A stretch of DNA of 64,000 bases, taken from IMG/VR virus record IMGVR_UViG_3300027969_000039, positions 62,001-126,000 of that record; one strand, 5' to 3'. The notes below the pieces were generated by a model. The model ran no database searches and was not told the DNA's origin. It was given only the letters and a program-made list of their open reading frames with translations. Made by a program: the position numbers and the translations under genes. Positions 10,841 to 62,060 of this stretch are shown here, piece after piece. Each line of letters opens with the position of its first letter. Position 1 is the stretch's first letter.

Positions 10841-12523
10841 ATGAGATTTACCGAATTTATATCTGAGAACGAAAAGCCAGGATTATGGGCAAACATCCAT
10901 GCCAAACGTGACCGAATCAAACATGGATCCGGTGAGCGTATGCGTAAGCCCGGAAGCAAGGGTGCTCCAACAGCAGATGCATTGAGAAAGTCAGCAACTG
11001 ATGAAGCAGCTAATCCAGCACAGCAAGCAGCTATCGCTATCAATATGAAGAAGCATCATCAGAAGCCAAAAGGTGTGGCGGAAAGCGAGTTGGATAAATT
11101 TAAAAAGTATACCAGACCAGTTGTAAAGACTGAACCAAAGATCGAAAGAACAACTAATCCTGCAGGAAGAACAACTGACCATGTTGAATGGAAAGTTACA
11201 AGTCCGACGGGCGAGATTCACAGATATAAATCTAAAAAACAAGCACAAGAGCATTTTGATTCTTTTGGTCAGCAAGGTGTGGCGGAAGGCGACATGTATG
11301 GCGATCAAGAAGTAAGTTGGGAAAAAGGTGGTCGTAGAGCCCCAACTGGTGCATTTAAAAATCCTCATACCAGCGCATTAGGTCGAGCATTATATCGTGA
11401 CCTCAGCAAGCAACCTAAATTAAGCCCGCAACAAGTCCAACGCAACAAAGAGCGTTGGGCACAGCGTCAAGCGGAGCGTGAGCAAGGTGTGGCGGAAGGC
11501 TCTGAAACACCACAACAGCAACAAGTTCGTGCTGCAATTACTAAAGGCATGGAAAAATGGGATAGTAATAATAAGGCTACATATCAGAGTCAACCAACTA
11601 AAACTAATTATATGCCACCCAGCGGTTACGCTAGCGATTCATTGACAGGAGTAGATTCCATTGATCCTGATGGTACCGTGGTCATATCTCTTGGAAATAC
11701 TGGTGCCGAAGCCACAATTAAAAAATTAGCAACATTAGGTGGTATGCCCGGCATTAAAACTAGACAACTGCAATCACCAACCGTTTCATCTAGAGGTGTG
11801 GCGGAAGGCAGAAAGCCATTTCGTGATTTAAAATCTTGGGCTGACCACGCAAAATCACAAGGATTGAAAGTAAGCCCATCTGATCACATTGATTGGACAC
11901 ACGATGCTACTGATAAAGAAGGTAAGGTGCGTGGTAGATTTGTGACTACTAGTGTCCCACAAAATAGTCGAGGATTCATCCACCAGCAAGGTGTGGCGGA
12001 GGGAGAGAGTACTATTCTTTCTCCTGGAACACAAGTTACAGTACCTCACAAGGGAAAAATGGTTTCAGGTAAAATCGTTAGATATGATTCAGGCAAAGGT
12101 ATAGAGTCCCCAGCATATATTGTTGATATCAGCGAATACGAATCACTCATCGTTCCAGTTTCTAGAGTGAAGCAAGACATGGATGAAGGCGAGAATTGGT
12201 CAAAGCACAATAACAAACGTGCAGGCGGGATGAGTAAAAAGAGTGTAGCCAGTTATCGCCGCAGTCATCCTGGAAGCAAGATTCAAACAGCAGTCACAAC
12301 TAAGCCTAGTAAATTAAAGAAGGGCAGTAAGGCAGCAAAACGCCGTGCTAGCTTCTGTGCTAGAATGCGTGGCATGAAGAAACATCGTACTGGTGCGAAA
12401 ACAGCACACGATCCAAACAGCAACATAAATAAAAGTTTGCGTAGATGGCATTGCGAAAGTATTGAAGAACTACACGAATTAGTAATGCTTGCCGAACAAT
12501 TTATTAGGAACAATAAGAAATGA
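10841..12523 (+). CDS. modular putative internal-head polyprotein with GVAE-delimited modules
   Basis: N-terminus MRFTEFISE; five GVAE(G/S) joints separating unrelated 65-103-aa segments. Confidence 0.75.
   Translation: MRFTEFISENEKPGLWANIHAKRDRIKHGSGERMRKPGSKGAPTADALRKSATDEAANPAQQAAIAINMKKHHQKPKGVAESELDKFKKYTRPVVKTEPKIERTTNPAGRTTDHVEWKVTSPTGEIHRYKSKKQAQEHFDSFGQQGVAEGDMYGDQEVSWEKGGRRAPTGAFKNPHTSALGRALYRDLSKQPKLSPQQVQRNKERWAQRQAEREQGVAEGSETPQQQQVRAAITKGMEKWDSNNKATYQSQPTKTNYMPPSGYASDSLTGVDSIDPDGTVVISLGNTGAEATIKKLATLGGMPGIKTRQLQSPTVSSRGVAEGRKPFRDLKSWADHAKSQGLKVSPSDHIDWTHDATDKEGKVRGRFVTTSVPQNSRGFIHQQGVAEGESTILSPGTQVTVPHKGKMVSGKIVRYDSGKGIESPAYIVDISEYESLIVPVSRVKQDMDEGENWSKHNNKRAGGMSKKSVASYRRSHPGSKIQTAVTTKPSKLKKGSKAAKRRASFCARMRGMKKHRTGAKTAHDPNSNINKSLRRWHCESIEELHELVMLAEQFIRNNKK
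11072..12001 (+). repeat. five in-frame direct repeats GGTGTGGCGGA(A/G)
   Basis: copies start at 11072, 11276, 11486, 11795 and 11990; spacings 204, 210, 309 and 195 nt; three copies extend to AGCAAGGTGTGGCGGA. Confidence 0.95.
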
Positions 12524-34914: not shown

Positions 34915-35355
34915 TTACGCTCGGGCTTTCTTTAGAGTACTACGAATCATCCATTGATGTTTTTCGTGAGCATCTAGCCTCTCAGCGATAAAGTTTGCTA
35001 TACCTTGTTTGTTTTCTTGTGTAGCTGAAGCAAAGCAATGGTTGAGTAAATCAATCATCTTACTGTTATCTTCGAATAATTCAGCAAACATTAATTCAGC
35101 ACGAGGAATTTTAAGTTGGTCTTGAATGATAGATAATTCAGCGTAGCGTGTTAAACTGCCGGGTGCATAACTATCCAATGTACGAATGTATTCAGCAACT
35201 TTATCTACTGCACTATATACTTCTTCATAGAAATTACCAAAGAATTCGTGATATTCAGGGAAGTCAGGTCCTTCAACATTCCAATGAAAGTTCTGTGCTT
35301 TGATGGATAGTGAATTAACGCTAGCCAATAATACTTTTAAATCTTCTGCTAACAT
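34915..35355 (-). CDS. dps: Dps ferritin-like protein
   Basis: FHWNVEG..F...HEFF..FYEE...VD.VAEYIR; HEKHQWM. Confidence 0.9.
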   Translation of the reverse strand: MLAEDLKVLLASVNSLSIKAQNFHWNVEGPDFPEYHEFFGNFYEEVYSAVDKVAEYIRTLDSYAPGSLTRYAELSIIQDQLKIPRAELMFAELFEDNSKMIDLLNHCFASATQENKQGIANFIAERLDAHEKHQWMIRSTLKKARA

Positions 35356-37367
35356 TATTGCTGTCCTTGTTGTTGTAGTAACTGTTTTGCCTTTTCTACA
35401 CTAAGCATTGGGCGAGGATGTGATCCATCTATAATACTTTGTAGATATTCTGCACTATAACCACTTGGTGCTTTTGCTGCTGGTTGTTCATCTGATGGTG
35501 CTACTTGAGTAGCAACTGGTTTACCAGTTAAACGATTAATACCAGGATCTTGATCTGGTAGTACACGACCGTGTGCGGCACCGCCTAATGCCATAGCACC
35601 TGCTAATGCTGCACTACCTAATGCGCTTTTCCAGCCTTCATCTACTTGGTGTACACCTGAAAGTATTGCTGATTCTTTTATTGGTACACAGTTATTAACT
35701 CTAGTATCACCCTTCATCTTAGTGCCTTGTTTTTTATAACCAGTCCAGCATTTAGGATCCATACGTTGTTTTTCTTCATCCATAGTTTGATTACCACTAG
35801 CTTGATCAATTCTGCGTTGTAAGTTAGCTTGCTCATCCGGGGTTGGAGCACCTGGATTACCTCCTGACACTCTTAAGTTTGCAGGTTTTGGTTGTTTTGC
35901 ATTACTTGGTGCTGCTGCTTGTTGACTTTGTTGTGCTAATTTACTAAATTCTTTAGCACCATAACTTACTGCCGCAGTTCTATTTCTTCTCTTTAAACTA
36001 TTTAATCCATCTAGTACATCATCTATTGCATCTTTAGCATCATCGACCGTTCTAAAAGATGATGGTCCAGATGATGGTGCGGCTGCTTGCCCTGCACCAC
36101 CTGATGCTGCACCAGCTGATGGTGCGTATCCTCTACCGCCACTTGCTGCTGACATGCCTGAACCTATTCTACTAGCTGGTACATTACTAGTTGTAGCTGC
36201 ATTGCTTGTAGTTTGTGGTGCTGATGCTCTGGTTTCAGGATTGACTTCACCAGTGTGACCCACATGTTGCATAGCTTGATTGGCTCTTGATGCGTCATAA
36301 CCTGTCATTTTACCGCCACCGTATGCATCTTTCATTCCGGCATATGTTCCTTTTACACTACCAATTGCATCACCTACCCCACCCGCCATACGACCCAATA
36401 ATCCTTGTTTGGGTTGTGCCGGCTGAACCGGTAACGGCTTTGCAGCAGGAAGTTTAAAGTTAGTAAATAAATTATTCAATGTCTCCTGTGGTACACCTGC
36501 TTTAATCATAATATCTGCAATTTGATCACTATCGGTTGGCTTATTTGCTTTATTCCATGCTTGCAATAATTTGTCAGCAGTAATCTTTGTTGTTAAGTTT
36601 TGCCCTTTGGTTTTAGCCCAATCTAGTATACCTTCATCAACTTGTTTTTTATGCTCATTAACTATTCTACCAATTAATCTATAAATTTGTGATTCAGATA
36701 GTTCAAATGATTCATTTCTCATTTGTAGACCATTGACTTCACCCGGCTTAGCAGGAACTCTTTTTGGTGCTATCGCTGATAGTGCAGAAGTAGCCGTAGT
36801 TGGTGGTTTAGGTTGTACTCTAGGAAATTTACTAAAATCACCTGTATCTGTTCTTGTACCATCTGATGGACGACCAACAAGTTCTGTACCTTTGTTTAAT
36901 GCAGCAGTTGCAGCAGCTTGTCTTTGTTGTCTTGCTGCTTGTGCAGCTTGTCCTGCAGGAGTAGTTGGTTCTTCTGCTGCTGAAACTGATGGATCTGCAC
37001 TTGTTGATTGTTTTAATCCTGAAGCTGCAACTGGATTAGGAGTGCTAAACATATCTTTAACTTTGCCAATTGCTGTTCTATTGTTGCCGCCACCTACTAA
37101 GTTAGCAGCACCACCTGCTGATTGAATCTCTTGTGCGCTTTTGAAAATTTGTTGAATTTGTTGAGGGTCAACTGCAACTCCTTCTTTAATTTTTTTTGCA
37201 TCATTATCAAATTGTTTTTTAGTAGCAGTATTGATACCTTTAAAACGTTTGTCGCCTTTTTTGAAGTCACCTTCACTATCAGCTTTGCTAGCATTAGCCG
37301 CAGCAGCAGTTTTGTATTTTGCCAACTTGTCGTTAGATAGTTCTGCTAAAAATTCATTGGTTCTCAT
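35355..37367 (-). CDS. modular putative internal-head polyprotein
   Basis: MRTNEFLAE leader; Ala/Gly-rich linkers; joints IKEG, VDEG and MDEE; CWTGYKK...NCVP module. Confidence 0.7.
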   Translation of the reverse strand: MRTNEFLAELSNDKLAKYKTAAAANASKADSEGDFKKGDKRFKGINTATKKQFDNDAKKIKEGVAVDPQQIQQIFKSAQEIQSAGGAANLVGGGNNRTAIGKVKDMFSTPNPVAASGLKQSTSADPSVSAAEEPTTPAGQAAQAARQQRQAAATAALNKGTELVGRPSDGTRTDTGDFSKFPRVQPKPPTTATSALSAIAPKRVPAKPGEVNGLQMRNESFELSESQIYRLIGRIVNEHKKQVDEGILDWAKTKGQNLTTKITADKLLQAWNKANKPTDSDQIADIMIKAGVPQETLNNLFTNFKLPAAKPLPVQPAQPKQGLLGRMAGGVGDAIGSVKGTYAGMKDAYGGGKMTGYDASRANQAMQHVGHTGEVNPETRASAPQTTSNAATTSNVPASRIGSGMSAASGGRGYAPSAGAASGGAGQAAAPSSGPSSFRTVDDAKDAIDDVLDGLNSLKRRNRTAAVSYGAKEFSKLAQQSQQAAAPSNAKQPKPANLRVSGGNPGAPTPDEQANLQRRIDQASGNQTMDEEKQRMDPKCWTGYKKQGTKMKGDTRVNNCVPIKESAILSGVHQVDEGWKSALGSAALAGAMALGGAAHGRVLPDQDPGINRLTGKPVATQVAPSDEQPAAKAPSGYSAEYLQSIIDGSHPRPMLSVEKAKQLLQQQGQQ

Positions 37368-37369
37368 AA

Positions 37370-39475: not shown

Positions 39476-39528
39476 GACGGTTTCCCAAAGTTATAGAGTA
39501 TTTATCAAAATACCATAATAAGGAAACT

Positions 39529-40935
39529 TTAGATTTTGCCGTTTGCTTTAGCTGTTGGGGGTATTCCAGCACGACTGGTGTTCCAGTAGAATGCTTTTGC
39601 GTTCTTTTTTATACTGTCAGGGTGTACATCTACAGTTAGTGCTGTCTTGAATCGCGGGTCATTCTTTTGTTTTTCGCTTGGAATATATCCACTTGCTTCA
39701 CTTATTCCACCACGATATTGATTATCTTTAACGCCAGCATAAGGACTTACTGGTGGAGTTTTTTCTGCTGCAAATTGCATGGTGTTGTATTCTTCCGCCA
39801 CACCTTTTACTTTTGGATCTAAATCTTTCAAGCTATTCACATCACCTTGCTTGCGCCACTTTGACCACATTTTTTGTCCAGCGGTAGTTTGTGTTTCAGA
39901 AGGCAATACATTGACACCTAACATGCGAATCAAAGCATACATATTTGCGGCTATACCTTGTCCTTGATATTTAGGATCGACTCTGGTCTTCATGCTTGTT
40001 ACACCTTGCACTTCACCTGTATATAGATTTCGTGCTTTGGCAAATTGTGCATCTCCAATTGGATTGAGATTTTTTTTATCATATGCTTTGATAGATAAGA
40101 AATCATTTTTCTTCCCTGCATTTGTAACATGATAAAGTATTCCGTTTATGTCTTGTTTGAAATCTAATCCTGGTTTCCATAACTCATTGTTGAATTGTTC
40201 TTCTTCATCTATGTTCTGATACATAGTCTCAAACGATAACTTCTCACTATGTAACTTGTCTCTTAAATCATATAATTTTGTAATATATCCTTGACTACGC
40301 AACATCTTATATGCTAAATTTTCAGGACCAAACTCACCACCTTTATCTAATCCTGCTTGTCTATATCGTTTGATCGTGTCTATTATATGTTTTACTTTAC
40401 TATATTTTCTTGACTGTAGTGCTATCTCTATCAAACCTAATAACTTTTCATACTTGCTTTTAGTAGAAGTTTGGTCAAAATCACTTCTACGCTTAGTGGG
40501 TATTCTTATCCACTGATCATTCATTACACTGTATTCACCTAAACTTACAACAGGTTGTCTACTGTCTTGTACATATAATTCTACTGGAATTTTATGAATT
40601 GTTATATCATGTGTATCATTGTATATTGTTTTCTTTGCTGTAAATAACTCTTTATATACTTCATTGGTAGGTAAATTACCCATGTCTACTAATATATGTA
40701 AATCTAAATCACTGTGCTTTGTGTAGCTAAATGCAGCATTACTACCTGAGATTGTTATGTCTTTTACATCTAAATCATGTACACCTAATTCTTCTAAAAA
40801 ATCTGCTGCTATCAGCATAAGCTGGTCTCTAACATCTGGTCGCAATTTAGTTTCATTCCATAACTTAGGATTAAGTTTATCGTGGAATGTTACCGCATCA
40901 CTTAGTTTAAAGCTATTAAGTTCTTTTTGATTCAT
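39529..40935 (-). CDS. Pol-beta-family nucleotidyltransferase fused to a GNAT module
   Basis: GSNAAFSYTKHSDLDLH (GS..DxD) and VELYVQD; VDPKYQGQGIA (GNAT motif A) followed by KGVAEE. Confidence 0.8.
   Translation of the reverse strand: MNQKELNSFKLSDAVTFHDKLNPKLWNETKLRPDVRDQLMLIAADFLEELGVHDLDVKDITISGSNAAFSYTKHSDLDLHILVDMGNLPTNEVYKELFTAKKTIYNDTHDITIHKIPVELYVQDSRQPVVSLGEYSVMNDQWIRIPTKRRSDFDQTSTKSKYEKLLGLIEIALQSRKYSKVKHIIDTIKRYRQAGLDKGGEFGPENLAYKMLRSQGYITKLYDLRDKLHSEKLSFETMYQNIDEEEQFNNELWKPGLDFKQDINGILYHVTNAGKKNDFLSIKAYDKKNLNPIGDAQFAKARNLYTGEVQGVTSMKTRVDPKYQGQGIAANMYALIRMLGVNVLPSETQTTAGQKMWSKWRKQGDVNSLKDLDPKVKGVAEEYNTMQFAAEKTPPVSPYAGVKDNQYRGGISEASGYIPSEKQKNDPRFKTALTVDVHPDSIKKNAKAFYWNTSRAGIPPTAKANGKI
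39793..39804 (-). repeat. exact copy of the GGTGTGGCGGAA repeat
   Basis: + strand TTCCGCCACACC; variants at 38270-38281 (GGTGTAGCGGAA) and 38510-38521 (GGGGTAACGGAA). Confidence 0.9.
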
Positions 40936-42570: not shown

Positions 42571-44289
42571 TTATTTTTCGTCTAGGTAATCAAATTTAGG
42601 TTCAACAGGTAATCCGTCGCTACGCTCACGCTTTTTCATTTGTTCGCTGTCTCGTGCGGCTCTTAGTTTAGCGATAGGTGCCCCATCACCTGCTAAGTCT
42701 TTTGCCACATGAGCCATAACATCACTTTCTTTTTCCATTACAGTTGCTATACCAACACCAACGCCTAAGCTAGCTAGTGTATATTTGAGTGTGTCTACCC
42801 AATTCTTGCCGTTCATTCTTGCACCCACTGCAGGGACGATTGAGTTCAATATACCTTGCATCATTAGATTAGTTTGATAGGGTGTTAGTTGTATATTATT
42901 AGCAAGATTTATTGCGCCACCGCCTAGTAGTGCTGCTATAGCTGTAATGATTCCACCTTGTAAGTATGGATTGTGTTTACCTTCTTTAAATATATCAATC
43001 AACTTTTTGCGAACAACTGGGTCATCAGTCTTTTGTAATAAGTGTCGTGCTTTCTCTACATAGTTTTCTACTTCTTGTTCTTGTGCTTTTTGCATTACAG
43101 GTGTATAGAACTTCATAGTAGCATCAACTATTGGATCAGTTTCTTTATCTTCTTCAATAGGTTCAGTAGTAGCACCCATCTTCATTTTTTCTTGCACCGG
43201 CATTGCCTTCTTAACTTTTTTAGTATTGTACACTCCAAATTCTCCACCACCGTTGGTTTGGCTTGTCCAACCTGGTAATGACGGTAATACTCTTTTAATC
43301 ATTCTAGCATACAACGCTCTACGACCGGGTTCTGCGGCTTGGAAATATAACAATGAAGGTTTAAATTTTTTCACATACTGAACTATAGCATTGACTACAA
43401 TTCCAAACACTTCTGCGGCTGCCCCTGTACCTTCGATACCCTGTTTAACAACTGGAAATCCGCCTTTCATATCCTGTGTAATTTGTTCAAAACTAACAAA
43501 TTTGCTATTTTCATATACTTCGTCTGAATCAACATAATCATATGGACTCATGTTCTCTGGTCCAATATATGGTTCTAAGAAATCCAATTGATATTCTACT
43601 CCATTGCTAGCAGTGAAGTTAAATTTAATCATATCAGGATTACTAGTGTCCCATTGTGAAGTAGCTGTAGATGCTTTAGTATCAAAAACTTCTTGTAAAT
43701 TAACATCAACACCCATGCCAGCATCTAATAGCTTAACGACATTTGCTGCTAATGCGGGGTTACTTTGTGTAGCTGGATACAAACTCATTACCATTGCAGT
43801 CTTGCGTTTCTCGTTTAGTTTAGGCCACATTGCACGAATCTCACTTGCACTGGTAATGCCAGGACCAAACTCTACTGTTGGTAGATATTCAATGTAAGCA
43901 TGTTGTCCAAATGGTTTTAAATCTTTGCCTGTGTATGGTTGAAAGTATGCAGGACTTCCATCTTTCTTTGTGCCACCTGGTTTAGGTTGCTCATTCTTAT
44001 CTTTTTCACTACGCACAAATATTAATACATCACTGTCAGGATTATACTTGCTTGTTATTTCTTGTGGTCTGAATGGACTACGAACTTGTACAAATTGTCC
44101 TTTCTTTACACCTGCTACTTTAGCAAGTTTTTCTTTGATTGCAAAAGGAAAAGGTCTTTCACTAGTATCGTCTGATGCCGCAACATATACATCAGCACCC
44201 GGAAAGGTTTGTAATGCTGATTGATATAGTGAGGCATGACCCGCATGAAACGGGTGAAAGCCTCCGGGCATTACGACTATTGTACTCAT
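42571..44289 (-). CDS. HxGH nucleotidyltransferase fused to additional modules
   Basis: PGGFHPFHAGH, VRSEKD and SASEIR; then a domain shared with 58507-59604 and a hydrophobic module. Confidence 0.7.
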   Translation of the reverse strand: MSTIVVMPGGFHPFHAGHASLYQSALQTFPGADVYVAASDDTSERPFPFAIKEKLAKVAGVKKGQFVQVRSPFRPQEITSKYNPDSDVLIFVRSEKDKNEQPKPGGTKKDGSPAYFQPYTGKDLKPFGQHAYIEYLPTVEFGPGITSASEIRAMWPKLNEKRKTAMVMSLYPATQSNPALAANVVKLLDAGMGVDVNLQEVFDTKASTATSQWDTSNPDMIKFNFTASNGVEYQLDFLEPYIGPENMSPYDYVDSDEVYENSKFVSFEQITQDMKGGFPVVKQGIEGTGAAAEVFGIVVNAIVQYVKKFKPSLLYFQAAEPGRRALYARMIKRVLPSLPGWTSQTNGGGEFGVYNTKKVKKAMPVQEKMKMGATTEPIEEDKETDPIVDATMKFYTPVMQKAQEQEVENYVEKARHLLQKTDDPVVRKKLIDIFKEGKHNPYLQGGIITAIAALLGGGAINLANNIQLTPYQTNLMMQGILNSIVPAVGARMNGKNWVDTLKYTLASLGVGVGIATVMEKESDVMAHVAKDLAGDGAPIAKLRAARDSEQMKKRERSDGLPVEPKFDYLDEK

Positions 44290-45293: not shown

Positions 45294-46022
45294 TCAGACA
45301 GGTACGGGTCGCTTTTCTAATTTATAGCGTTTTCCAAGCATATGTCCATACATTAATATCAAATAGCTTAGTGTACTTTCATTGTCATAGTCAATAGAAT
45401 GATTTCCGCTAGTATAGCGATATTGCCAACTATTAATTGAAGCAATTGGGCGTCTAATATAGTCATTTAACCATATTTTCAATGCATTACTTGGAACCAA
45501 TTCTTTACTTTTCTTGATGGTATCGTGCAAATCTTTAATAAAATCTCTTTCTTCAATATACTTAGATTTTAAATAAATTCTATACTTGTGCTTTGGCTCA
45601 TTGACATAATACTTTGTACCAGCAAACTGCTCCAATTGCACTTCTGTGATTTTTACGGTAACTAGTCCAAGATCCTTCAATGTAAGCAACAAATCTAAAT
45701 TGTTGCTGTACACTGACATAGTATCCATCTCAAGTCTGAAAGTTACTAATCCGGGATTTTTGTTACTGTTACGCCAATCAATGAAGTTATTAAGTTCATT
45801 GATTTTCTCCATCGTTACTGCTTTTCTATCTGCTCGTACCTTGCGATATCCGGTCTCATTCAATCTCCTAATCAACTCACCCGGAGATTTAACATAATTA
45901 GTGAATGCTAATCCATCGATAGTAAATTTAGCCCGATATCTATAGTTGTTGTAATAATTAGTTTCCTTATATTCATAAAAATCAATATTAGGAATGTTTT
46001 CAACTGACCTCAATAATCCCAT
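45294..46022 (-). CDS. hypothetical protein
   Basis: 242-aa ORF overlapping the end of clpA. Confidence 0.7.
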   Translation of the reverse strand: MGLLRSVENIPNIDFYEYKETNYYNNYRYRAKFTIDGLAFTNYVKSPGELIRRLNETGYRKVRADRKAVTMEKINELNNFIDWRNSNKNPGLVTFRLEMDTMSVYSNNLDLLLTLKDLGLVTVKITEVQLEQFAGTKYYVNEPKHKYRIYLKSKYIEERDFIKDLHDTIKKSKELVPSNALKIWLNDYIRRPIASINSWQYRYTSGNHSIDYDNESTLSYLILMYGHMLGKRYKLEKRPVPV

Positions 46023-48261
46023 CTTCGTTCACCTTGGCTGTTAGTTTATGTGTTACTGCAAAATCAATTGCACCTTCGTTCATCACTACATTGATTGTAG
46101 CAGATTTAATACGTTCAAACAAGACTTTTTTACTTAGAGGTACCCGAATCAATTCATCAATCTTGCGACTTAATGGTCGTGCGCCCATCTTCTTATCGTA
46201 TCCTTGCTCTGCCAAATACTCAACTACTGGTTCACTTAGATTCAATACAATATCATGCTTGTCAACCAAACTCTTTTTCAAGTCATCGGTAAACTTGATA
46301 ACAATCTTCTTAATCGCAAGTGTATCCAATTTGTTAAACTTGCAAATCAAGTCAACACGATTTCTAAACTCGGGCTTGAAGAATTCTTTCAATGCTTTGT
46401 CATCTTCACCGGTCTTCTCTTGTGTGCCGAAGCCGATGTTGTTGCGTTCGCTATCACTACTACCTAAATTACTGGTCATGATAATGATACTGTTCTTACA
46501 GTTAACTTGCTTACCATTACTTCCAGTGATATGACCTTCGTCCAACATCTGCAAGAAGATGTTAAAGATATCTGGATGTGCTTTCTCAACTTCATCAAAC
46601 AACATGATCGAATGTGGGTTCTTGCTCAAGTCATTGATCAATCGTCCACCTGACACTTGACTATCACCAAACCCAACATAACCCGGGGGAGGTCCAATCA
46701 AACTACTTACGCTATGTTTTTCTGAGTATTCGCTCATGTCATACTTAAGCAACGGCATGTCTAAATTCTTGCTTAGTAGTTTAGCAAGTTCAGTCTTACC
46801 GGTACCAGTTGGTCCCAAGAACAAGAAACTACCTGTTGGCTTAGTGTCATTACCAATACCAGCAAAGTTAACATAGACTCGCTCAAGTACCTGTTGTACA
46901 GTTTCATCTTGTCCGTATAGTTTGTCTTTGATGTTTGATTCTAAATTTTGAATCAATTCAAAGTTATCACCCTTCATTTTATCAGCAGGTACTCCAGTGA
47001 ATCGTTCAACTTGGTCAAACACAAGTTCTTTAGTAATGATTGCACCTTTGTTTTCTGCTACACGCTGTTTAGCACAAGCAGCATCAAGCAAATCAATAGA
47101 TTTATCTGGGTTCTTACGGTCATGAATATAGCGGTCAGCACTTTCAACTGCTGCTTTGATTGCCTCATCAGTAATTTCAACATTGTGAAAATCATTTAGT
47201 CTAAGACTCAATCCATTAAGAATGCGAATTGTTGTATCGTGGTTAGGTTCATCAACTGAGATACGATAGAACCTACGCATCAACGCACGGTCCTTCTCAA
47301 AGCTATCATAGTATTCTTCCCATGTTGTACTAGCAATAACTTTAAGAGTACCTTTAGTAATTGCAGGTTTAATCATGTTACTGAAATCAACCGACCCATT
47401 GTTAGCACCACCTGCGCCTTGCATAGTATGTGCCTCGTCAATAAAAAGAATAGTCTTTTTCTTTGTGTTCAATGCCTCAAGTACTTGCTTAACCTTTTCC
47501 TCAAAGTCACCGCGATACTTACTACCTGCAAGTAGTGACCCAATCTCTAAACTGTATAGTTGATGGTCTTGCAAGAATTCAGGCACTTCTTTATTAATCA
47601 TCATCTGTGCTAGACCTTCAGCAATTGCTGTTTTACCAACACCAGGATCACCGACCATCAATACATTACTCTTAAACCGTTTAGCAAGTACGTTAATGAT
47701 ATCATCAAGTTCTTTGCTACGACCAATCAATGGCTCAAGTTTACCTTGTGCTGCTAGTTGTGTCAGGTTGATTGTGTATTCTTCTAGTATCTCATCAGCT
47801 TGGTTCTCTGTTAGATTTCCAGTCTCACCATGCTTATAATGTTTTTGCCAATGTGATACAAATTCGTTTTTGTTAATTCCGTATTTCAACAAGAAATAAT
47901 GTGCATGGCTATTGCCTTCTGACGCAATGCTTAAGTATAAGTCAACAGTAGTAACCTGTCTACGACCACTAAACAATACTTGTGTGACGCAACGATTCAT
48001 AACACGCTCTAAACTATTTGTTTTGCGTGGAACTACATCGTCATCTTTGCTTACGATAGCATGTAAACTATCTAAGTATGCATTAATCTCTTGATCCATT
48101 GTTTCAACGTCTGCACCAAAACTATGCAAACATTTTTTGAATGAATTATGATTTATCAGTCCAAGTAGTAAATGTTCCACGGTTACATATTGATGTTTTC
48201 TTTCTTTAGCATAATGAATCGCTTGTTCAATAATACTATCTATTTCGGGTGAATGGTTCAT
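46000..48261 (-). CDS. clpA: ClpA-like Hsp100 AAA+ chaperone
   Basis: Clp N-domain (EHLLL); GDPGVGKT and GPTGTGKT Walker A motifs; IGF ClpP-docking loop. Confidence 0.92.
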
Positions 48262-55569: not shown

Positions 55570-58116
55570 TTAAGCGTTGGCGCCTCTAAGTATTGCAAAA
55601 TTAATTATTGGAGTATCACTTGGGATAGCAGATTGATTGTATATCTGTATGGTAAATGTATTAGCGCCAACCGATAAAATGCTAGGAATATAACTGGTAG
55701 CAGTAGCACCGGAACGGAAATTTATTATAACTATATCAGATACTGTACAAACTACATTAGATACAGCAAAGCTATTCCATGTATTAGCAGTAGATGTTGT
55801 AGTAAACAATGTAATTGATCCAGTAACACATGGTGCTGCCATTGCGACTGCTGTACTACGACTTGTTGCTTGAGTTCCTGCACTACCAGCACCTGATGCA
55901 TATCCAACACCTTGAGTTTTACTATTAGAAAGTATAAAACCAGTACCGGTTAAATTACCACTAGTTAAAGTTGTTAATGTACCAACACTAGTAATATTAC
56001 CTTGTGCTGCTGTTGTTACGGTTCCTGCTGTAGTTGCGCTTGTTGCTGCTCCGGACAAAGCACCAACAAACGTTGTTGCTGTAATAGATGCATTGCCCAA
56101 GTTAGCACTAATGCTTGTATTAATTACCGCAGATGAATTCCCATTTGATGATGATGTAGAGAACGTAGGGTATACCGTTGTTGATGTAGATGTATTTTGT
56201 AATAATGCCGACGCATTTGTTGCACTAGCTACAGTTCCAGTTACATTAGCACCTACCAATGAACTCAACCCATTTCCGTTACCAGTAAATACACCTGTGT
56301 TAGCAGTAAATGCTACTGCGGTTACTGTACCATTAACTCCCAATGATGTTAGTGTGCCAACACTAGTAATATTACCTTGTGCTGCTGTTGTTACAGTACC
56401 TGCTGTTGTAGCACTACCTGCTGTTGTAGCACTACCTGCTGTTGCTACACTTAAATTAGCTACCTGTGTTGTACTTGTAACTACAAAAGGTGCAGTACCG
56501 CCTGCAACATTAGATATAAATTGCGGACTGGTTACATTAGCACTTGCTAGTACTTGCGCTGTGCCTAAATTAAGTACATTAGCATTACCGGATACATTTG
56601 CTGTGCCTGTGATATTAGCACCAGTACTAGTTAATACTAATCTGTTAGCACCTGTTACTGCAATAGATACATTTGCATTAGCAGTAATAGAAATGTTACT
56701 ATTACCATTTTGTAATAGTCCACTATTGATAGTAGTGATGTTACCAGTTGTAATAACTGATGTAGTTGTAGTTGAATTGCCTGAAATTAAGTTACCAACA
56801 ACGTTAGCAGTACCTGCTATGTTAGCGCCGGTCGATGTAACAACAAATTGAGCAGTTACATTGCCCGCGATAAACGTAGAAACATTACCACCAGATGTAA
56901 GTGTGATATTGCTAGTACCACTATTGATTAATGGAATGTTAGCACTCGTACTAAATACACCTGTTGTACCACTTACATTACCCAACCAAGTTAATCCTCG
57001 TGCATTACCTAATGTATTATAAGTTACTACTTCGCTAGCAATAGTTACATTACTACCAAATGCAAATTCACTATTACCAGTATCCCATCCCATAAACGCA
57101 GTTACGGGCGCACTTGTATAATACTGTAATGCAGTTCCTCTATCTTTCCCATCATTACTTGTTAATGCATTGCCGTTTGGTCCGCCGCCCAATGAAATGA
57201 TTGGATCTTGAACATTAAATGAAGTTACATTGTAATAGATTGTATTTCCTGTAACTGTTAAGTTTCCCGTAACGGTTGTATTTCCAGTTACTGTTAAATT
57301 ATTACCAACAGTTAAATTACCCACTATAGAAGTGTTAGTAGGTAAATCTACTGTCATTGTACCAGTTGATGTTATAGGACTATTTGTTACATCTAATGAA
57401 GTACTAGATAGACCTACACTAGTGACACCTGCCGCCGCTGCTGAGGTAGAAACTGTAATGTTTCCATTACTACTACTAAGTGATATTCCAGAGCCAGCAT
57501 TTAATCTTGTTACACCAGTATTAATGATACTGATGTTTCCTGCGGTAGTAATAGGACTACCAGATATTTGTATACCTGCACCAGTTGTTGTCACACCTAC
57601 ACTAGTTACAGTACCAGTGGAAGCAGCATTTGCTATACTAGTAACACGACCATATTGGTCTACTGTAACGGTTGGATAAGTATACGTACCAGCAACAACA
57701 CCACTGGTAGCTAAATCCAATGTGATGATACCACTACTAATAATAGGTCCGCCCACTGAGGTGATCCTAGCTCCTGCTGCTGCGCCTACCACATCAATGT
57801 TTGATACACCACCGCCACCATTACCGCCTCCAGGCGCAGTAATTGTTATGTTCCCGTTACTTTGAGTTAAAACAATACTATCATCACCGGCAACTAAATT
57901 AGTTACACCGGTGTTTGTGATAGTCAAATATGTGTTGCTATTACTATATTCTACATATATTCCATTGCCAGAAACAAAAGTTGTAGTTGGACTAGCACAA
58001 GAAAATAGTGTAGTGAAATTGTTCTTAGATTTATTAAAGGCCGTATATAACGAATCACTGCCCGCAGCTTCGTTCTGTAACCCAATATTGATGTTTTCTA
58101 TGCCTGAAATTGCCAT
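55570..58116 (-). CDS. tail fibre / long Gly-Thr-Asn-rich structural protein
   Basis: GTVTSV, GNLTV and ANVSGN-type repeats; ATAAATA upstream (58140-58134). Confidence 0.8.
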   Translation of the reverse strand: MAISGIENINIGLQNEAAGSDSLYTAFNKSKNNFTTLFSCASPTTTFVSGNGIYVEYSNSNTYLTITNTGVTNLVAGDDSIVLTQSNGNITITAPGGGNGGGGVSNIDVVGAAAGARITSVGGPIISSGIITLDLATSGVVAGTYTYPTVTVDQYGRVTSIANAASTGTVTSVGVTTTGAGIQISGSPITTAGNISIINTGVTRLNAGSGISLSSSNGNITVSTSAAAAGVTSVGLSSTSLDVTNSPITSTGTMTVDLPTNTSIVGNLTVGNNLTVTGNTTVTGNLTVTGNTIYYNVTSFNVQDPIISLGGGPNGNALTSNDGKDRGTALQYYTSAPVTAFMGWDTGNSEFAFGSNVTIASEVVTYNTLGNARGLTWLGNVSGTTGVFSTSANIPLINSGTSNITLTSGGNVSTFIAGNVTAQFVVTSTGANIAGTANVVGNLISGNSTTTTSVITTGNITTINSGLLQNGNSNISITANANVSIAVTGANRLVLTSTGANITGTANVSGNANVLNLGTAQVLASANVTSPQFISNVAGGTAPFVVTSTTQVANLSVATAGSATTAGSATTAGTVTTAAQGNITSVGTLTSLGVNGTVTAVAFTANTGVFTGNGNGLSSLVGANVTGTVASATNASALLQNTSTSTTVYPTFSTSSSNGNSSAVINTSISANLGNASITATTFVGALSGAATSATTAGTVTTAAQGNITSVGTLTTLTSGNLTGTGFILSNSKTQGVGYASGAGSAGTQATSRSTAVAMAAPCVTGSITLFTTTSTANTWNSFAVSNVVCTVSDIVIINFRSGATATSYIPSILSVGANTFTIQIYNQSAIPSDTPIINFAILRGANA
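55982..56445 (-). repeat. internal repeats in the tail fibre gene
   Basis: exact 38-bp duplicate at 55982-56019 and 56357-56394; 18-bp tandem unit ACCTGCTGTTGTAGCACT from 56398. Confidence 0.85.
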
Positions 58117-58160
58117 GGTTAGTCCTTATTATGTATTTATCAATAGGGATTAAATCAGTA

Positions 58161-58505
58161 TCACTCCATCATGTCATAGCTTGGCTGAAAACTGCTTCCA
58201 CAACCGCAAGTTGTCTGTGCATTTGGGTTACTAATAGTGAATTGACTACCGGATAAGTCATCTTTAAAATCAACTTCTGCTCCGGCAACATATTGCATAC
58301 TCATACTATCTACTAAAATCGTAGTAGATCCAGCTGGAATAGCCCAATCATCTTCGTTTTGTACTTCATCTAGTGTGAATCCATAACTCATTCCTGAGCA
58401 TCCTCCACCTTGTACATACATGCGTAATCTTAATGCAGGATTTCCCTCTTCTGCTATTACTTCTAATATCTTTGCTCTTGCGTTTTCTGTAACTGTTAAG
58501 TTCAT
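58161..58505 (-). CDS. erpA: A-type Fe-S cluster carrier (ErpA/IscA)
   Basis: GGGCSG.SY.F and [12 protein letters not shown] motifs; start MNLTVTE at 58505. Confidence 0.92.
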
Positions 58506-58506
58506 A

Positions 58507-59604
58507 TTATGATGTTCCTTCGCTAAACCACGGATCAATGATAACCGGTTGTCCGTTACTTCGTTGCATGACATTTGCCGTATGCAAATCCCATCCAAAT
58601 TTATTGATATTTCCTGTACTATATAATAACTGCATCACAGTATATAGCTGTTTATACATACTGTAAGTTTTTTTACTTGCAGGATTTTCTAGTATACTTT
58701 GCCATGTTCTAGCAAAAGTACCAGAATAGTTTGGACTAAAAAAATACCACGGGTGTCCATTTGTTAATTCGCTTTCCACAGTTGACCATGGTTTATTTCC
58801 ACTAACATAATCACTTAATAACCAAACCATACCTTGTAAGAAACCACCTTTTTCTATAGGGGATAATCTCTCCATCTCAATCTGAGTGTAGTCTTTGCCA
58901 TTGATATCGATGGTGTTCACTTCATTGAATCTAGGAACGCATGGTAAATCTTGATGACTCATTGAAAACTCATAAAACTTACGAAATACTTGTTCAGCTT
59001 TGCTACCCGCATCCTCTGGCATCAATATCTTGATCACATGACTATCATCTTTGGCAAAAACAGTAGCATCAGCACCGCTGCCAACATGATGATATCCAGC
59101 CGCTCTTAGTTGTTTCCAAATCTCATTGCTATTCTTAGTAGCTACTTCAGCTTCATCCAAATTATCTTTGACAATCTTGAAGTAGTCATCATACTCACCT
59201 GAATCAATAGGTGCCGCATGGTAACCGGGTACTTTGATTCTATTCAACATACGCTGGTATAATTTAGTTCTATTGTCATCTGCTTTGTGTGAAGTGAATG
59301 TAAGTTGATCAGGATGATAGCTAGAAATCAAATCTTTGATTGACTCAATGACAAATGAGAATACTTGTAATTCATTACCAGAACCAGTCTTTCTAAAAGT
59401 TGTACCAGTTCCGTCCTTTTCATATTCAGTAAAGTCTATTTCCCATACTGATTTACCTTCATCATCGTCATACTGTGAAGCATTAAAAACAATAACACGA
59501 CCACCTATCGTAGCCTTAGTGGTGTATAAGTCTGGAGTTGCTCTAACTACTTCACTAGAGACATTGCTAGTAAATACTTCGGTTATAAATTCTGTGGCTC
59601 TCAT
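58507..59604 (-). CDS. leader + unknown domain + protein kinase-like domain
   Basis: MRATEFITE leader; [20 protein letters not shown] and IIDP kinase motifs. Confidence 0.8.
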
Positions 59605-60155
59605 AGACTCTTACCCCAACGGGTATTAATCACATTCCAGTTTATGATTTTCCACTGTTCTTTGATGTACTTTTTCTTATCACTGCCGTAATCTAATATG
59701 AAAGCATGTTCCCACCAGTCAATCAATAACAATATGTCATTGCGTACTTGATGATTTACTATCGTTTTAATCTTGCCGTCTGTAGCTAAGTATATCCAAC
59801 CACTACCCTGTATCTTCATGGCCTCAATCTCAAACTCAGACTTCATGTTATCATAATCACCGTAATGTTTATTAACGAATCCCATCATAGGGCCGTTGGG
59901 CTTGTTATTGTTTCTCACTTCACGGAACTGCGGGAATAATGTATTATGCAGGAAAGCGCCTGCATAGTTGAAATCTCTATCACCCTCTTTATTATTGTAT
60001 CGTTCAGCATACCCGTGGGCTAGTTTCCCATAGTGCAAATCCAATGTGTCTTTGGATAGTACAGGACTGACTTCAGCCGGAGTGAAGTTTAAGGGTATGA
60101 TTTCTATGTCTTGAGGCTTACTCTTTTCCTCAAGCAATGTAATAATGTCACGCAT
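59601..60155 (-). CDS. Fe/Mn superoxide dismutase with leader
   Basis: LHYGK..Y, LHN, QGSGW and DWWEHA; four metal-ligand positions present. Confidence 0.88.
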   Translation of the reverse strand: MRDIITLLEEKSKPQDIEIIPLNFTPAEVSPVLSKDTLDLHYGKLAHGYAERYNNKEGDRDFNYAGAFLHNTLFPQFREVRNNNKPNGPMMGFVNKHYGDYDNMKSEFEIEAMKIQGSGWIYLATDGKIKTIVNHQVRNDILLLIDWWEHAFILDYGSDKKKYIKEQWKIINWNVINTRWGKSL

Positions 60156-60176
60156 AACATGTATTTATGCGTATTG

Positions 60177-60392
60177 TTACCTGCGCCGAGTAATGCGTCC
60201 TTTAGATAGGTCGTAGGGTGAGAATTCTACTTCCACCGTGTCTCCGAGCAATATTTTAATGTCGTTCTTACGCATACGACCACTGATGTAACCAGTAATC
60301 ACATTACTTGGATTCATCTGTACTTTGAACATAGCATTGGGTAATACATCGATCACCTTACCGTCCATCTTGATTCCCTCTTCTTTTGCCAT
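60177..60392 (-). CDS. infA: translation initiation factor IF-1
   Basis: MAKEEGI...LPNAMF...ISGRMR..I.IL.GD.V.VE.SPYDL.KGRI. Confidence 0.95.
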   Translation of the reverse strand: MAKEEGIKMDGKVIDVLPNAMFKVQMNPSNVITGYISGRMRKNDIKILLGDTVEVEFSPYDLSKGRITRRR

Positions 60393-60411
60393 TTTAGTTT
60401 ATTAAACTCCT

Positions 60412-60810
60412 TTAGTTGCGGCGCATTGTGCTGATATCTCTAGCTTCCTCATCGCTAAAGACAGGAACAGCATTACTCTTGTGCATAGTACCAATACCAA
60501 GAATCTTTGTTCCTGTGTATTTTGGTGCTGGCTTGCTAGACACGGGACCAGAATGTCCAGTATCCAAACTCTTGATGTGATGTGTGTTGGTACGACCGAT
60601 CGGTGTACTAAGTGAATAGACCAATGGTTCTGCTGCCATCGCTCGTTTTTGTCTCTTTGTTTCCTGTTCAACTCCCCACTTTTTCTGTAGGTCGTGCCAG
60701 TCAGATTCTAGTTCACGGTGCTTCCGTGCTTCCTCTGCATTGCGAAACTTAATTTTGCCCTTGCGTTTACCACCCATCGATAGGGAGGGATGTGCTAGAT
60801 GCATAGTCAT
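60412..60810 (-). CDS. hypothetical basic protein
   Basis: 132-aa ORF. Confidence 0.7.
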   Translation of the reverse strand: MTMHLAHPSLSMGGKRKGKIKFRNAEEARKHRELESDWHDLQKKWGVEQETKRQKRAMAAEPLVYSLSTPIGRTNTHHIKSLDTGHSGPVSSKPAPKYTGTKILGIGTMHKSNAVPVFSDEEARDISTMRRN

Positions 60811-60839
60811 ACGGATATAAACATAGTTAATATGAGTAT

Positions 60840-60868
60840 ATTATAATACAAAAATCATTTATTGTCAA
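60840..60868 (-). promoter_or_regulatory. consensus sigma70 promoter
   Basis: TTGACA-N17-TATAAT. Confidence 0.8.
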
Positions 60869-60871
60869 CCG

Positions 60872-61267
60872 TCATCTTTTCAGTATTTCAACAATCTTTT
60901 CTTTTTCCAGAATGTCGGCTTCTAATTCCATATATTGCTTACGCAATTCTCGCAATTTTTTCCACTTTACCTCTAGTTTTTCGTTGGGATGTAGTATCGC
61001 TAACCGTTCTTCTATCTTAGTCAAGGTCTTATCTAGGCTTTTGCCCTTGACTTTAATATCACCCTCAAAAACAGCATCACCTTTAACTTGTAAAGTACCA
61101 GTAGGTTGATGACTAATAGTGTCAGTCCAGACTGGACTTGTGCCATTATTAACTAGAAATTGTCCGCCAGTTCCTGTAGTTATTGGATTTATTGGATTTA
61201 TATTTATACTAGTACCTGTGGTTGTATAAACTTGTTGTGTTGGTGGATAGATTGAACTATTATTCAT
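60872..61267 (-). CDS. hypothetical protein
   Basis: 131 aa; coiled-coil C-terminus. Confidence 0.65.
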   Translation of the reverse strand: MNNSSIYPPTQQVYTTTGTSININPINPITTGTGGQFLVNNGTSPVWTDTISHQPTGTLQVKGDAVFEGDIKVKGKSLDKTLTKIEERLAILHPNEKLEVKWKKLRELRKQYMELEADILEKEKIVEILKR

Positions 61268-61488
61268 GTTTTCTTTAATATATAACGGCCTTCTTCATCT
61301 AATCCAACTTCAATATTATCTCCCTCTTTCCAGCCCATTTGGTCAAGCAATGCTTGTGGGATAGGTAATAATAAGTCATCGTCATTGTCAGGATTTGGTT
61401 GCGTTATTACTTCATAACGCATTCTTTCTTGTCCAGGATTAGGTCTAGCCATGTGTCTAGTATAATGTATTTGTTGATTACTAATCAA
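61264..61488 (-). CDS. AbrB/MazE-type DNA-binding domain protein
   Basis: LLLPIPQALLDQMGWKEGDNIEV; start may be at 61452. Confidence 0.7.
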   Translation of the reverse strand: MISNQQIHYTRHMARPNPGQERMRYEVITQPNPDNDDDLLLPIPQALLDQMGWKEGDNIEVGLDEEGRYILKKT

Positions 61489-62060
61489 GTTTTATGGATG
61501 AATGGTCCGTAAATCTTTTCAAGTTCTTGGATAGTTTGAGCAACAGTACTATCTTCATGCTTTACTGCAATGCCACCTGCACTACTCCATGCATCTAAAT
61601 ATTTGCCATAATCATCTACTAGTACATTTGGGATGCCACCATTTAATGCATGTTTGTACTTTGCACCAGTGAATATTGCACTACCACTAGTTCCCGGGTT
61701 ATATTGGTCTAGCCAATCTTTTTTAGCTTCTATGCTAGCCTTCGCATACGGACCGCGCAACGGAGCAGACAATACGGTGAACGGGATTTTATTATCATTT
61801 AGCCACATTACAATACGCATACCACCTGTTAGTGGCTTTAAGTCTCTAAAAAACTGATAAACTTGTTCCGGGCTACTTGTTGCTAATGCTTGTATATCTT
61901 CTTCTCGTCTTGGAATCTCTTTGTAACTAGAAACCCCATGCTTTCCAGCCCAGGCGCCAAAGAAATCTGCTTGAACTCCATCCATATCTAGGTATAGATG
62001 TGGCATCTTTGCTTCTGGTTCAGACTCAATTTCTTCTAATAATTCTCGTATACGCATCAT
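61485..62060 (-). CDS. HAD-family 5'(3')-deoxyribonucleotidase with leader
   Basis: YLDMDGV, VLSAP, K.DWL and LVDD motifs; leader MRIRELLEE. Confidence 0.82.
   Translation of the reverse strand: MMRIRELLEEIESEPEAKMPHLYLDMDGVQADFFGAWAGKHGVSSYKEIPRREEDIQALATSSPEQVYQFFRDLKPLTGGMRIVMWLNDNKIPFTVLSAPLRGPYAKASIEAKKDWLDQYNPGTSGSAIFTGAKYKHALNGGIPNVLVDDYGKYLDAWSSAGGIAVKHEDSTVAQTIQELEKIYGPFIHKT

Follow-up and report, generated by a model that had tools for sequence, protein, structure and literature searches.

A gene encoding a 365-amino-acid (aa) protein, P0001, on a freshwater phage genome is proposed to specify an effector that is loaded into the head of the phage, processed there by the prohead protease and injected into the host, a reading based on sequence features and held with moderate confidence. 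The gene is located in a window of 64,000 nucleotides (nt), i.e. positions 62,001-126,000 of the IMG/VR virus record IMGVR_UViG_3300027969_000039, and its product comprises a short N-terminal leader, a GNAT-like module, a joint and a minimal kinase domain. Since the leader closely resembles the head-loading tag of phage T4, P0001 probably travels inside the virion and enters the host together with the DNA. Modelled domain folds, catalytic residues, leader family, conserved joints, T4-type protease, capsid protein and gene order are directly supported. Phage proteins that are injected together with the DNA precede phage gene expression and shape the first minutes of infection as well as the contest with host defences. 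To our knowledge, few such proteins are known beyond T4, P1, N4 and the phiKZ group.

Leader, joint and head machinery

All motifs quoted in an earlier note on this DNA reside in a single open reading frame (ORF) on the minus strand (Table 1). The span assigned there to a leader-tagged kinase, 58507-59151, extends from A152 to the stop codon, with 59151 being the first base of the A152 codon (directly after NLDE) and 58507 the last base of the stop codon; leader and joint had been recognized, while the GNAT-like module between them was missed. The designation as leader-tagged is borne out by MRATEFITE at residues 1-9; a leader of this family was found on 172 out of 210 relatives retrieved with whole-protein or either-half queries, most of the others being truncated by contig ends. 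The capsid targeting sequence (CTS) of T4, MKTYQEFIAE, is removed by the protease gp21, which cuts after L/I-x-E; Asp in place of the Glu blocks processing in T4 but leaves targeting intact. MRATEFITE resembles the CTS in M1, a basic residue 2, the E-F-I-x-E stretch and the terminal I-x-E.

The consensus of the leader family is M-R-A-x-E-F-I-x-E with I or L at position P3, and residues 1-12 of P0001 are disordered in the structural model (predicted local distance difference test, pLDDT, <50). When all six frames of the genome were scanned for the pattern [RK]..EF[ILT].E, six copies emerged, five of them immediately after the ATG of a long ORF; three of these five leader-tagged genes (P0001, P0213 and P0214) are situated in the window. 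The leader copies differ by synonymous codons and are preceded by unrelated DNA, so that selection acts on the peptide. A scan of IMG/VR by the leader DNA pattern alone yielded at least 120 loci, with at least 146 ORFs in at least 26 mutually unrelated clusters, often with several in tandem. Leader-tagged cargoes elsewhere include an ADP-ribosyltransferase (PF03496, E 9.5e-13), for which tblastn detected no relative among cultured phages, and a ParB_N protein with a borderline match. Peptidase_S77 was present in all five large leader-bearing IMG/VR genomes tested (245-525 kb), and the 40-kb leader-bearing contigs represent 11-13 % fragments of similarly large genomes.

The record containing the window is a 303-kb virus genome (CheckV completeness estimate 86 %) that was found repeatedly in freshwater metagenomes, its source being a T4-related uncultured freshwater jumbo phage. 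Its gene content includes a gp21-type prohead protease, matching Peptidase_S77 at 98.9 bits, and a capsid protein that matches the Gp23 family at 328 bits. The order of the head genes (portal, 75-aa protein, acidic 273-aa protein, protease, coiled-coil scaffold, capsid protein) matches that of T4 genes 20-67-68-21-22-23, and the genome is thus predicted to provide a scaffolded prohead of the T4 type together with a gp21-type protease. The resemblance of the leader to the T4 CTS, the presence of the gp21-type protease and a gp23-type capsid protein, and the occurrence of the leader on ADP-ribosyltransferase, GNAT and ParB-like cargoes in related phages provide substantial indirect support for delivery with the DNA.

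The joint NLDE/AE, likewise pointed out in the earlier note, proved to be a true module boundary. Among the relatives with a locatable glycine loop, the residues ahead of the kinase fit (L/I/V/T)-x-E/AE and form at least 19 different tetrapeptides (e.g., NLDE, SIDE, ALEE, GVAE, PIDE, DVVE and KTNE), the joint being absent in one truncated relative, P0120. In stand-alone kinases the leader runs directly into AE and supplies the site itself (e.g., FTNE/AE), and a contig from a river metagenome joins position 59586 to 59156 with three letters in between, yielding a leader-kinase fusion. The linker around the joint has low pLDDT in the AlphaFold2 model. Because a hydrophobic P3 and a Glu at P1 are kept behind many unrelated sequences, a protease site fits better than a fusion scar, and the joints are regarded as putative prohead-protease sites.

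For P0001 we infer head targeting, cleavage at two sites, injection and a substrate in the following way. The leader would dock the newly made protein on the scaffolding core of a T4-type prohead, as do the T4 CTS or the N-terminal propeptide of T4 Alt. The gp21-type protease would cut after I-T-E (residue 9) and probably also after L-D-E (residue 151), which would strip off the leader and free two enzymes within the capsid, the GNAT-like module (residues 10-151) and the minimal kinase (residues 152-365). Both would enter the cell with the DNA at infection and act there ahead of any phage gene expression, in the way of T4 Alt, on targets of the host or perhaps of the phage; the most likely substrates of the kinase would be proteins, as for T7 gp0.7.

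Kinase and GNAT-like modules

The C-terminal domain of P0001 matches phrog_15752, annotated as T7 0.7-type protein kinase, with an E value of 8e-11 across residues 158-358 (profile positions 55-236 of 260). Invariant across 77 aligned relatives, the identities of which go down to 43 %, are the residues G177, D179, K192, W338, D339, H341, T342, D357 and P358; for G175 and N344 conservation is at least 90 %. The D-to-N spacing of 5 agrees with the catalytic loop of protein kinases. The AlphaFold2 model of the domain reached a mean pLDDT of 88.5 and a predicted template modelling (TM) score (pTM) of 0.84. Glycine loop, lysine, D-x-x-x-x-N, metal-binding Asp and the modelled two-lobed fold place the domain in the protein-kinase-like (PKL) superfamily, and the previous assignment as a protein kinase-like domain holds, its catalytic set being complete.

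The chain ends 8 residues past D357, and helices precede the catalytic loop in the AlphaFold2 model. Of the classical (Hanks-type) features, no activation segment, APE motif or C-terminal helical subdomain was found after the Asp; because the chain stops there, the usual substrate-binding lobe is missing. This truncation, together with the existence of non-enzymes among the internal proteins of T4, might speak for a structural role only, that of an internal head protein that has kept the shape of a kinase but no catalytic activity. Such a role appears highly improbable in view of the ATP-binding and phosphotransfer residues, all of which are invariant or nearly so across the 77 sequences despite their divergence.

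The score of P0001 against Pfam Kinase-PolyVal (PF18762) is 19.8 bits, i.e. below the cut-off of 27, and the match spans profile positions 13-50 of 160, from the glycine loop to the lysine. The same family is matched by 56 of the 77 relatives at E <0.01 (best 6.2e-7), some relatives carrying a precomputed PF18762 label, and none of the 77 matched Pfam APH (PF01636) or Pkinase. A search of the kinase profile against PDB sequences returned nothing significant, the best hit (E 0.04) being a poxvirus capping subunit. With Foldseek, kinases only were retrieved from the PDB, at probability 1.0 but TM scores of 0.33-0.45. The best matches in BFVD are proteins of uncultured phages, one of them a GNAT-kinase fusion, followed by T7-like entries named protein kinase (TM 0.55-0.68). 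A Foldseek-independent search (VIA-align) listed TkArkI, Mps1, HIPK3, MLKL and PknB at Z 8-9. Overall, the nearest families are Kinase-PolyVal and the T7 gp0.7-like phage kinases.

A structure search had been suggested as a check against a small-molecule kinase; it did match protein kinases, but the fold searches do not cleanly separate these from aminoglycoside kinases. The domain might thus not be a protein kinase at all and, whether packaged or not, act on small molecules (aminoglycoside or choline kinase) or on RNA (as the archaeal tRNA kinase ArkI). In line with this, the Foldseek list mixes MEK1, PERK and PknB with APH(2'') enzymes at E values of about 1e-4, TkArkI tops the VIA-align list (Z 8.9) level with protein kinases, and P0001 is devoid of the lobe to which protein substrates attach in classical kinases. 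The form D-L-H-x-x-N is, moreover, also that of the catalytic loop of APH-type kinases. Still, a non-protein substrate is judged distinctly unlikely, considering the absence of APH matches next to the many Kinase-PolyVal matches among the relatives, the match to the gp0.7-type PHROG, the phage protein-kinase entries neighbouring the domain in BFVD, and the fact that protein kinases outnumber every other type in the VIA-align list. The domain is thus an active-looking minimal kinase of the phage clade, and the evidence leans towards a protein kinase.

The GNAT-like module was modelled at a pLDDT of 79.9, with a C-terminal linker that is of low confidence or disordered. Its top Foldseek matches in the PDB are all GNAT acetyltransferases (E 1e-4 to 1e-3, TM about 0.45). 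GNAT enzymes bind acetyl-CoA by a loop of the form x-x-G-x-G/A; in the module, a G74-x-G76 loop, R112, L115 and Y116 are invariant. Pfam GNAT did not match the module, and DUF6934 scored 20.3 bits, below its cut-off of 27. On the strength of the model, residues 10-151 are considered a divergent GNAT-like enzyme module. Stand-alone leader-tagged copies of 141-155 aa exist, and the module is found behind NLQE/VFD in P0217 and behind NLTE/AFD in Vibrio phage nt-1. EST35_0349 of PA5oct, a jumbo phage in culture, is homologous to the module; it starts with MHLFELFDQIE and is annotated as virion protein by electrospray ionization tandem mass spectrometry (ESI-MS/MS). In whole-protein tblastn, only the N-terminal module was matched, in jumbo phages, and relatives of the kinase were not detected; megablast of window positions 56000-62000 revealed no match among cultured phages. 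A 572-aa leaderless protein (42571-44289, minus strand) contains a cytidylyltransferase-like HxGH domain, a second GNAT-like module after NLQE/VFD and a hydrophobic C-terminal region.

Other leader-tagged genes and gene neighbourhood

The second leader-tagged protein, P0213, is a chain of small, very basic modules connected by five GVAE/G or GVAE/S linkers and ending in a C-terminal DUF6321. Across all ORFs of the genome the tetrapeptide GVAE was counted only 7 times, and 5 of these copies are linkers of P0213. Two of the modules are separate small, basic and leaderless proteins in a cyanopodovirus, encoded between the capsid and tail-tube genes. More generally, cyanophages and pelagiphages encode modules of P0213 in small genes of their own. 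The third leader-tagged protein in the window, P0214, is of low complexity with a glycine/alanine-rich hydrophobic tail. Its gene belongs to a cluster (35355-40935, minus strand) that continues with genes for 701-aa and 468-aa proteins, each with one GVAE; GATAAATA is located ahead of the 701-aa gene, and the cluster may represent an operon of internal head proteins. On a related freshwater contig (L006:2645-6465, plus strand), a stretch of about 4 kb was found to contain four leader-tagged genes, of which the second to fourth follow one another directly; the first encodes a 543-aa multi-module protein, and a staphylococcal-nuclease-like gene with a signal peptide comes after the four. Outside the window, one open frame of 6459 aa was noticed (genome C1:187811-207190, minus strand).

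It is tentatively proposed, at a confidence clearly below that for P0001 itself, that a clade of T4-related freshwater jumbo phages (245-525 kb) runs a combinatorial system of cargo cassettes, in which strings of unrelated enzymes behind a T4-CTS-like leader and joined by prohead-protease-cut (L/I/V)-x-E linkers are loaded into the head as polyproteins and released for injection, and in which cassettes are shuffled between genes and strains by recombination at the leader and linker codons. Its cargoes would comprise kinase, GNAT, ADP-ribosyltransferase, ParB-like and small basic DNA-binding modules. This wider leader-and-linker system is a more interesting result than the single protein. Should the leader function as proposed, sequence alone would suffice to list what a large clade of uncultured phages injects, kinase and acetyltransferase-like enzymes would be added to this repertoire, capsid targeting of the T4 kind would prove old and widely distributed, and T4-type capsids could be loaded with proteins by means of natural leader and linker parts.

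The kinase gene is embedded in a group of auxiliary genes (58161-62060, minus strand) for an NT5C-like nucleotidase, IF-1, an Fe/Mn superoxide dismutase (SOD) and an IscA-type iron-sulfur carrier. The ATG of the kinase gene and the stop codon of the upstream SOD gene share bases (ATGA), and the two genes are predicted to be translationally coupled. The stop codon of the kinase gene is located 1 nt ahead of the ATG of the IscA-like gene. An apparent overlap of the P0001 and IscA-like ORFs was rejected, as the IscA family match begins at an internal Met, the ATG of which lies 1 nt past the kinase stop. A sigma-70-type promoter, perfect in both hexamers (TTGACA-17-TATAAT), heads a co-directional string consisting of a 132-aa gene, IF-1, SOD, the kinase and IscA, and points to early transcription of this string. 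The view that the kinase is delivered with the DNA rather than expressed early is, as an either/or, not supported in the face of this promoter. A contig from an RNA library, 97 % identical, covers 59194-59526; carry-over of DNA is possible. A gene for a Clp/Lon-type ATPase is located at 46000-48261.

The motif GATAAATA is present in 35 copies in the genome, 22 of which are located at most 60 nt upstream of a start on the same strand, head and fibre genes included; one copy precedes the fibre-like gene just downstream. By their distance to the ATG, two classes of copies can be told apart, one at about 10-15 nt and the other at about 25-35 nt. The classical late promoter of T4, TATAAATA, is not enriched in the genome (15 copies, 3 near gene starts), and GATAAATA, which is enriched, probably replaces it as late promoter of this phage. 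Coordinates of these and all other features are compiled in Table 1.

Table 1 Features of P0001, of other leader-tagged genes and of putative regulatory motifs (positions refer to the window unless indicated otherwise)
Feature	Position	Strand	Basis or remark
P0001, whole gene, 365 aa and stop	58507..59604	-	ORF list and translation
Leader MRATEFITE, residues 1-9	59578..59604	-	Motif scan and relatives
GNAT-like module, residues 10-151	59152..59577	-	AlphaFold2 model and Foldseek
Joint NLDE/AE, residues 148-153, putative prohead-protease site L-D-E/A	59146..59163	-	
Minimal kinase domain, residues 152-365	58510..59151	-	PHROG match, AlphaFold2
Glycine-rich loop GSGADATV, residues 175-182	59059..59082	-	Alignment, 77 sequences
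VIK, residues 190-192, ATP-anchoring lysine K192	59029..59037	-	Alignment
Catalytic loop WDLHTANVM, residues 338-346 (D339, H341, N344)	58567..58593	-	Alignment
IIDP, residues 355-358, metal-binding aspartate D357	58531..58542	-	Alignment
P0213, second leader-tagged gene, 560 aa, MRFTEFISE...	10841..12523	+	Motif scan
P0214, third leader-tagged gene in the window, 670 aa, MRTNEFLAE...	35355..37367	-	Two QVDE/G joints
Sigma-70-type promoter TTGACA-17 nt-TATAAT	60840..60868	-	12/12 match, inside 61-nt intergenic gap
CATAAATA, T4-late-promoter-like motif	60162..60169	-	14 nt upstream of SOD ATG
GATAAATA copies in the window	62070, 58141, 50887, 45290, 39506, 31188, 21519, 20043, 562	-	
GATAAATA copy in the window	10778	+	
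gp21-type protease gene	genome C1:233207-233842		Outside window
Leader-tagged ADP-ribosyltransferase, 200 aa	L082:6643-7242	-	IMG/VR contig, PF03496

Next to the mixed Foldseek list described above, several observations weigh against the preferred reading of P0001. Headed by a perfect sigma-70 promoter, the co-directional string of IF-1, SOD, kinase and IscA-like genes has the look of an early operon. Evidence of the late type is weak: all five leader-tagged genes are located within 2.6 kb downstream of GATAAATA, as compared to 32 % of all genes, and this distance test is only suggestive. The (L/I/V)-x-E motif is short, and conservation of the joint could stem from recombination history instead of cleavage. 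Loose matches to the leader are not specific, because the NT5C-like nucleotidase (61485-62060) begins with the loosely similar MMRIRELLEE. In the T4 CTS, targeting depends chiefly on residues 4 and 7 (F7) and processing on I8 and E10; the leader of this phage differs in having 9 instead of 10 residues and in lacking the targeting-relevant tyrosine at T4 position 4.

From such observations, P0001 could be an ordinary cytoplasmic enzyme that is made early and never packaged, its joints being scars of gene fusion and its leader serving as a translation-start or stability signal, as a tag for the AAA+ protease of the phage itself or as a recombination handle. The sigma-70 promoter, the auxiliary metabolic neighbours (IF-1, SOD, IscA, NT5C), the Clp/Lon-type ATPase encoded by the phage, and the fact that the best-known phage kinase, T7 gp0.7, is an early cytoplasmic protein would all be compatible with this. 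It is nevertheless considered rather unlikely: the leader has residues in common with two T4 head propeptides, protease site included, and is accompanied by Peptidase_S77 in 6/6 large genomes; the hydrophobic P3 and Glu P1 behind 19 or more preceding sequences are left unexplained by a fusion scar; the leader-tagged cargoes belong to classes of enzymes for which delivery by the head is known or predicted; and modules of P0213 occur within the structural gene cluster of another phage. Packaging, processing and injection of P0001 therefore remain the preferred reading.

Comparison with known phage systems

T7 gp0.7, named in the earlier note as a known phage Ser/Thr kinase, is likewise a phage kinase of protein-kinase-like fold, and gp0.7-like models in BFVD were matched at TM 0.55-0.61. 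The link holds insofar as PHROG, Kinase-PolyVal and BFVD place P0001 with phage kinases; T7 gp0.7 itself is remote, with weak direct similarity (hhalign probability 26 %) confined to the N-lobe. In addition, P0001 lacks the C-terminal domain for shut-off of host transcription, as nothing follows the kinase core, and gp0.7 is an early cytoplasmic protein without a leader.

In phages phiKZ, 201phi2-1 and SPN3US, a gp21-related protease removes propeptides of head proteins by cutting after the Glu of a 3-residue motif, and many proteins are ejected. Common to these phages and the one studied here would be jumbo-phage head proteins with propeptide removal at Glu sites. The sites are, however, of the S/A-x-E type, and the propeptides are long, dissimilar and unrelated in sequence to P0001. 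We know of no shared short leader described for this group.

The closest parallel is provided by T4. Internal proteins in T-even phages form a diverse set with the CTS as the only common feature, and, as with the CTS proteins of T4 (IPI-III and Alt), a single conserved leader is found here on many unrelated cargoes, in a genome that has the head-gene order of T4 and encodes a protease of the gp21 type as well as a capsid protein of the gp23 type. Alt is an ADP-ribosyltransferase that is packaged into the head and injected, both of its termini being propeptides cut by gp21. One of the leader-tagged cargoes elsewhere is an ADP-ribosyltransferase too, and the N-terminus of Alt, MELITELFDE, is resembled by a variant leader of the family, MRISELFENE. 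In contrast to T4, the cargoes include kinase and GNAT-like modules, which are not known among T4 head proteins, and several of them are multi-module chains with repeated (L/I/V)-x-E linkers. Furthermore, the hosts are uncultured freshwater bacteria, the genomes measure 245-525 kb, and head packaging is predicted.

Iyer, Burroughs, Anand, de Souza and Aravind (2017) described polyvalent proteins, for which packaging and delivery together with the DNA are predicted and the domains of which shuffle like cassettes; the domain types predicted to be packaged into heads include kinase, GNAT, ADP-ribosyltransferase and ParB. Their Kinase-PolyVal, placed with the protein kinases, has lost the whole C-terminal subdomain and kept the active site. 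The kinase of P0001 likewise lacks the C-terminal subdomain, retains the catalytic residues and is joined to a GNAT-like module. In contrast to polyvalent proteins with up to 15 modules, P0001 has two, its processing is proposed to proceed by the head protease at short linkers and not by an in-built metallopeptidase, and its N-terminal T4-type leader is absent from the published description. Conceptually, P0001 may thus be viewed as a small polyvalent protein, composed of a GNAT-like module and a minimal kinase, that carries a predicted head-targeting leader of the T4 type.

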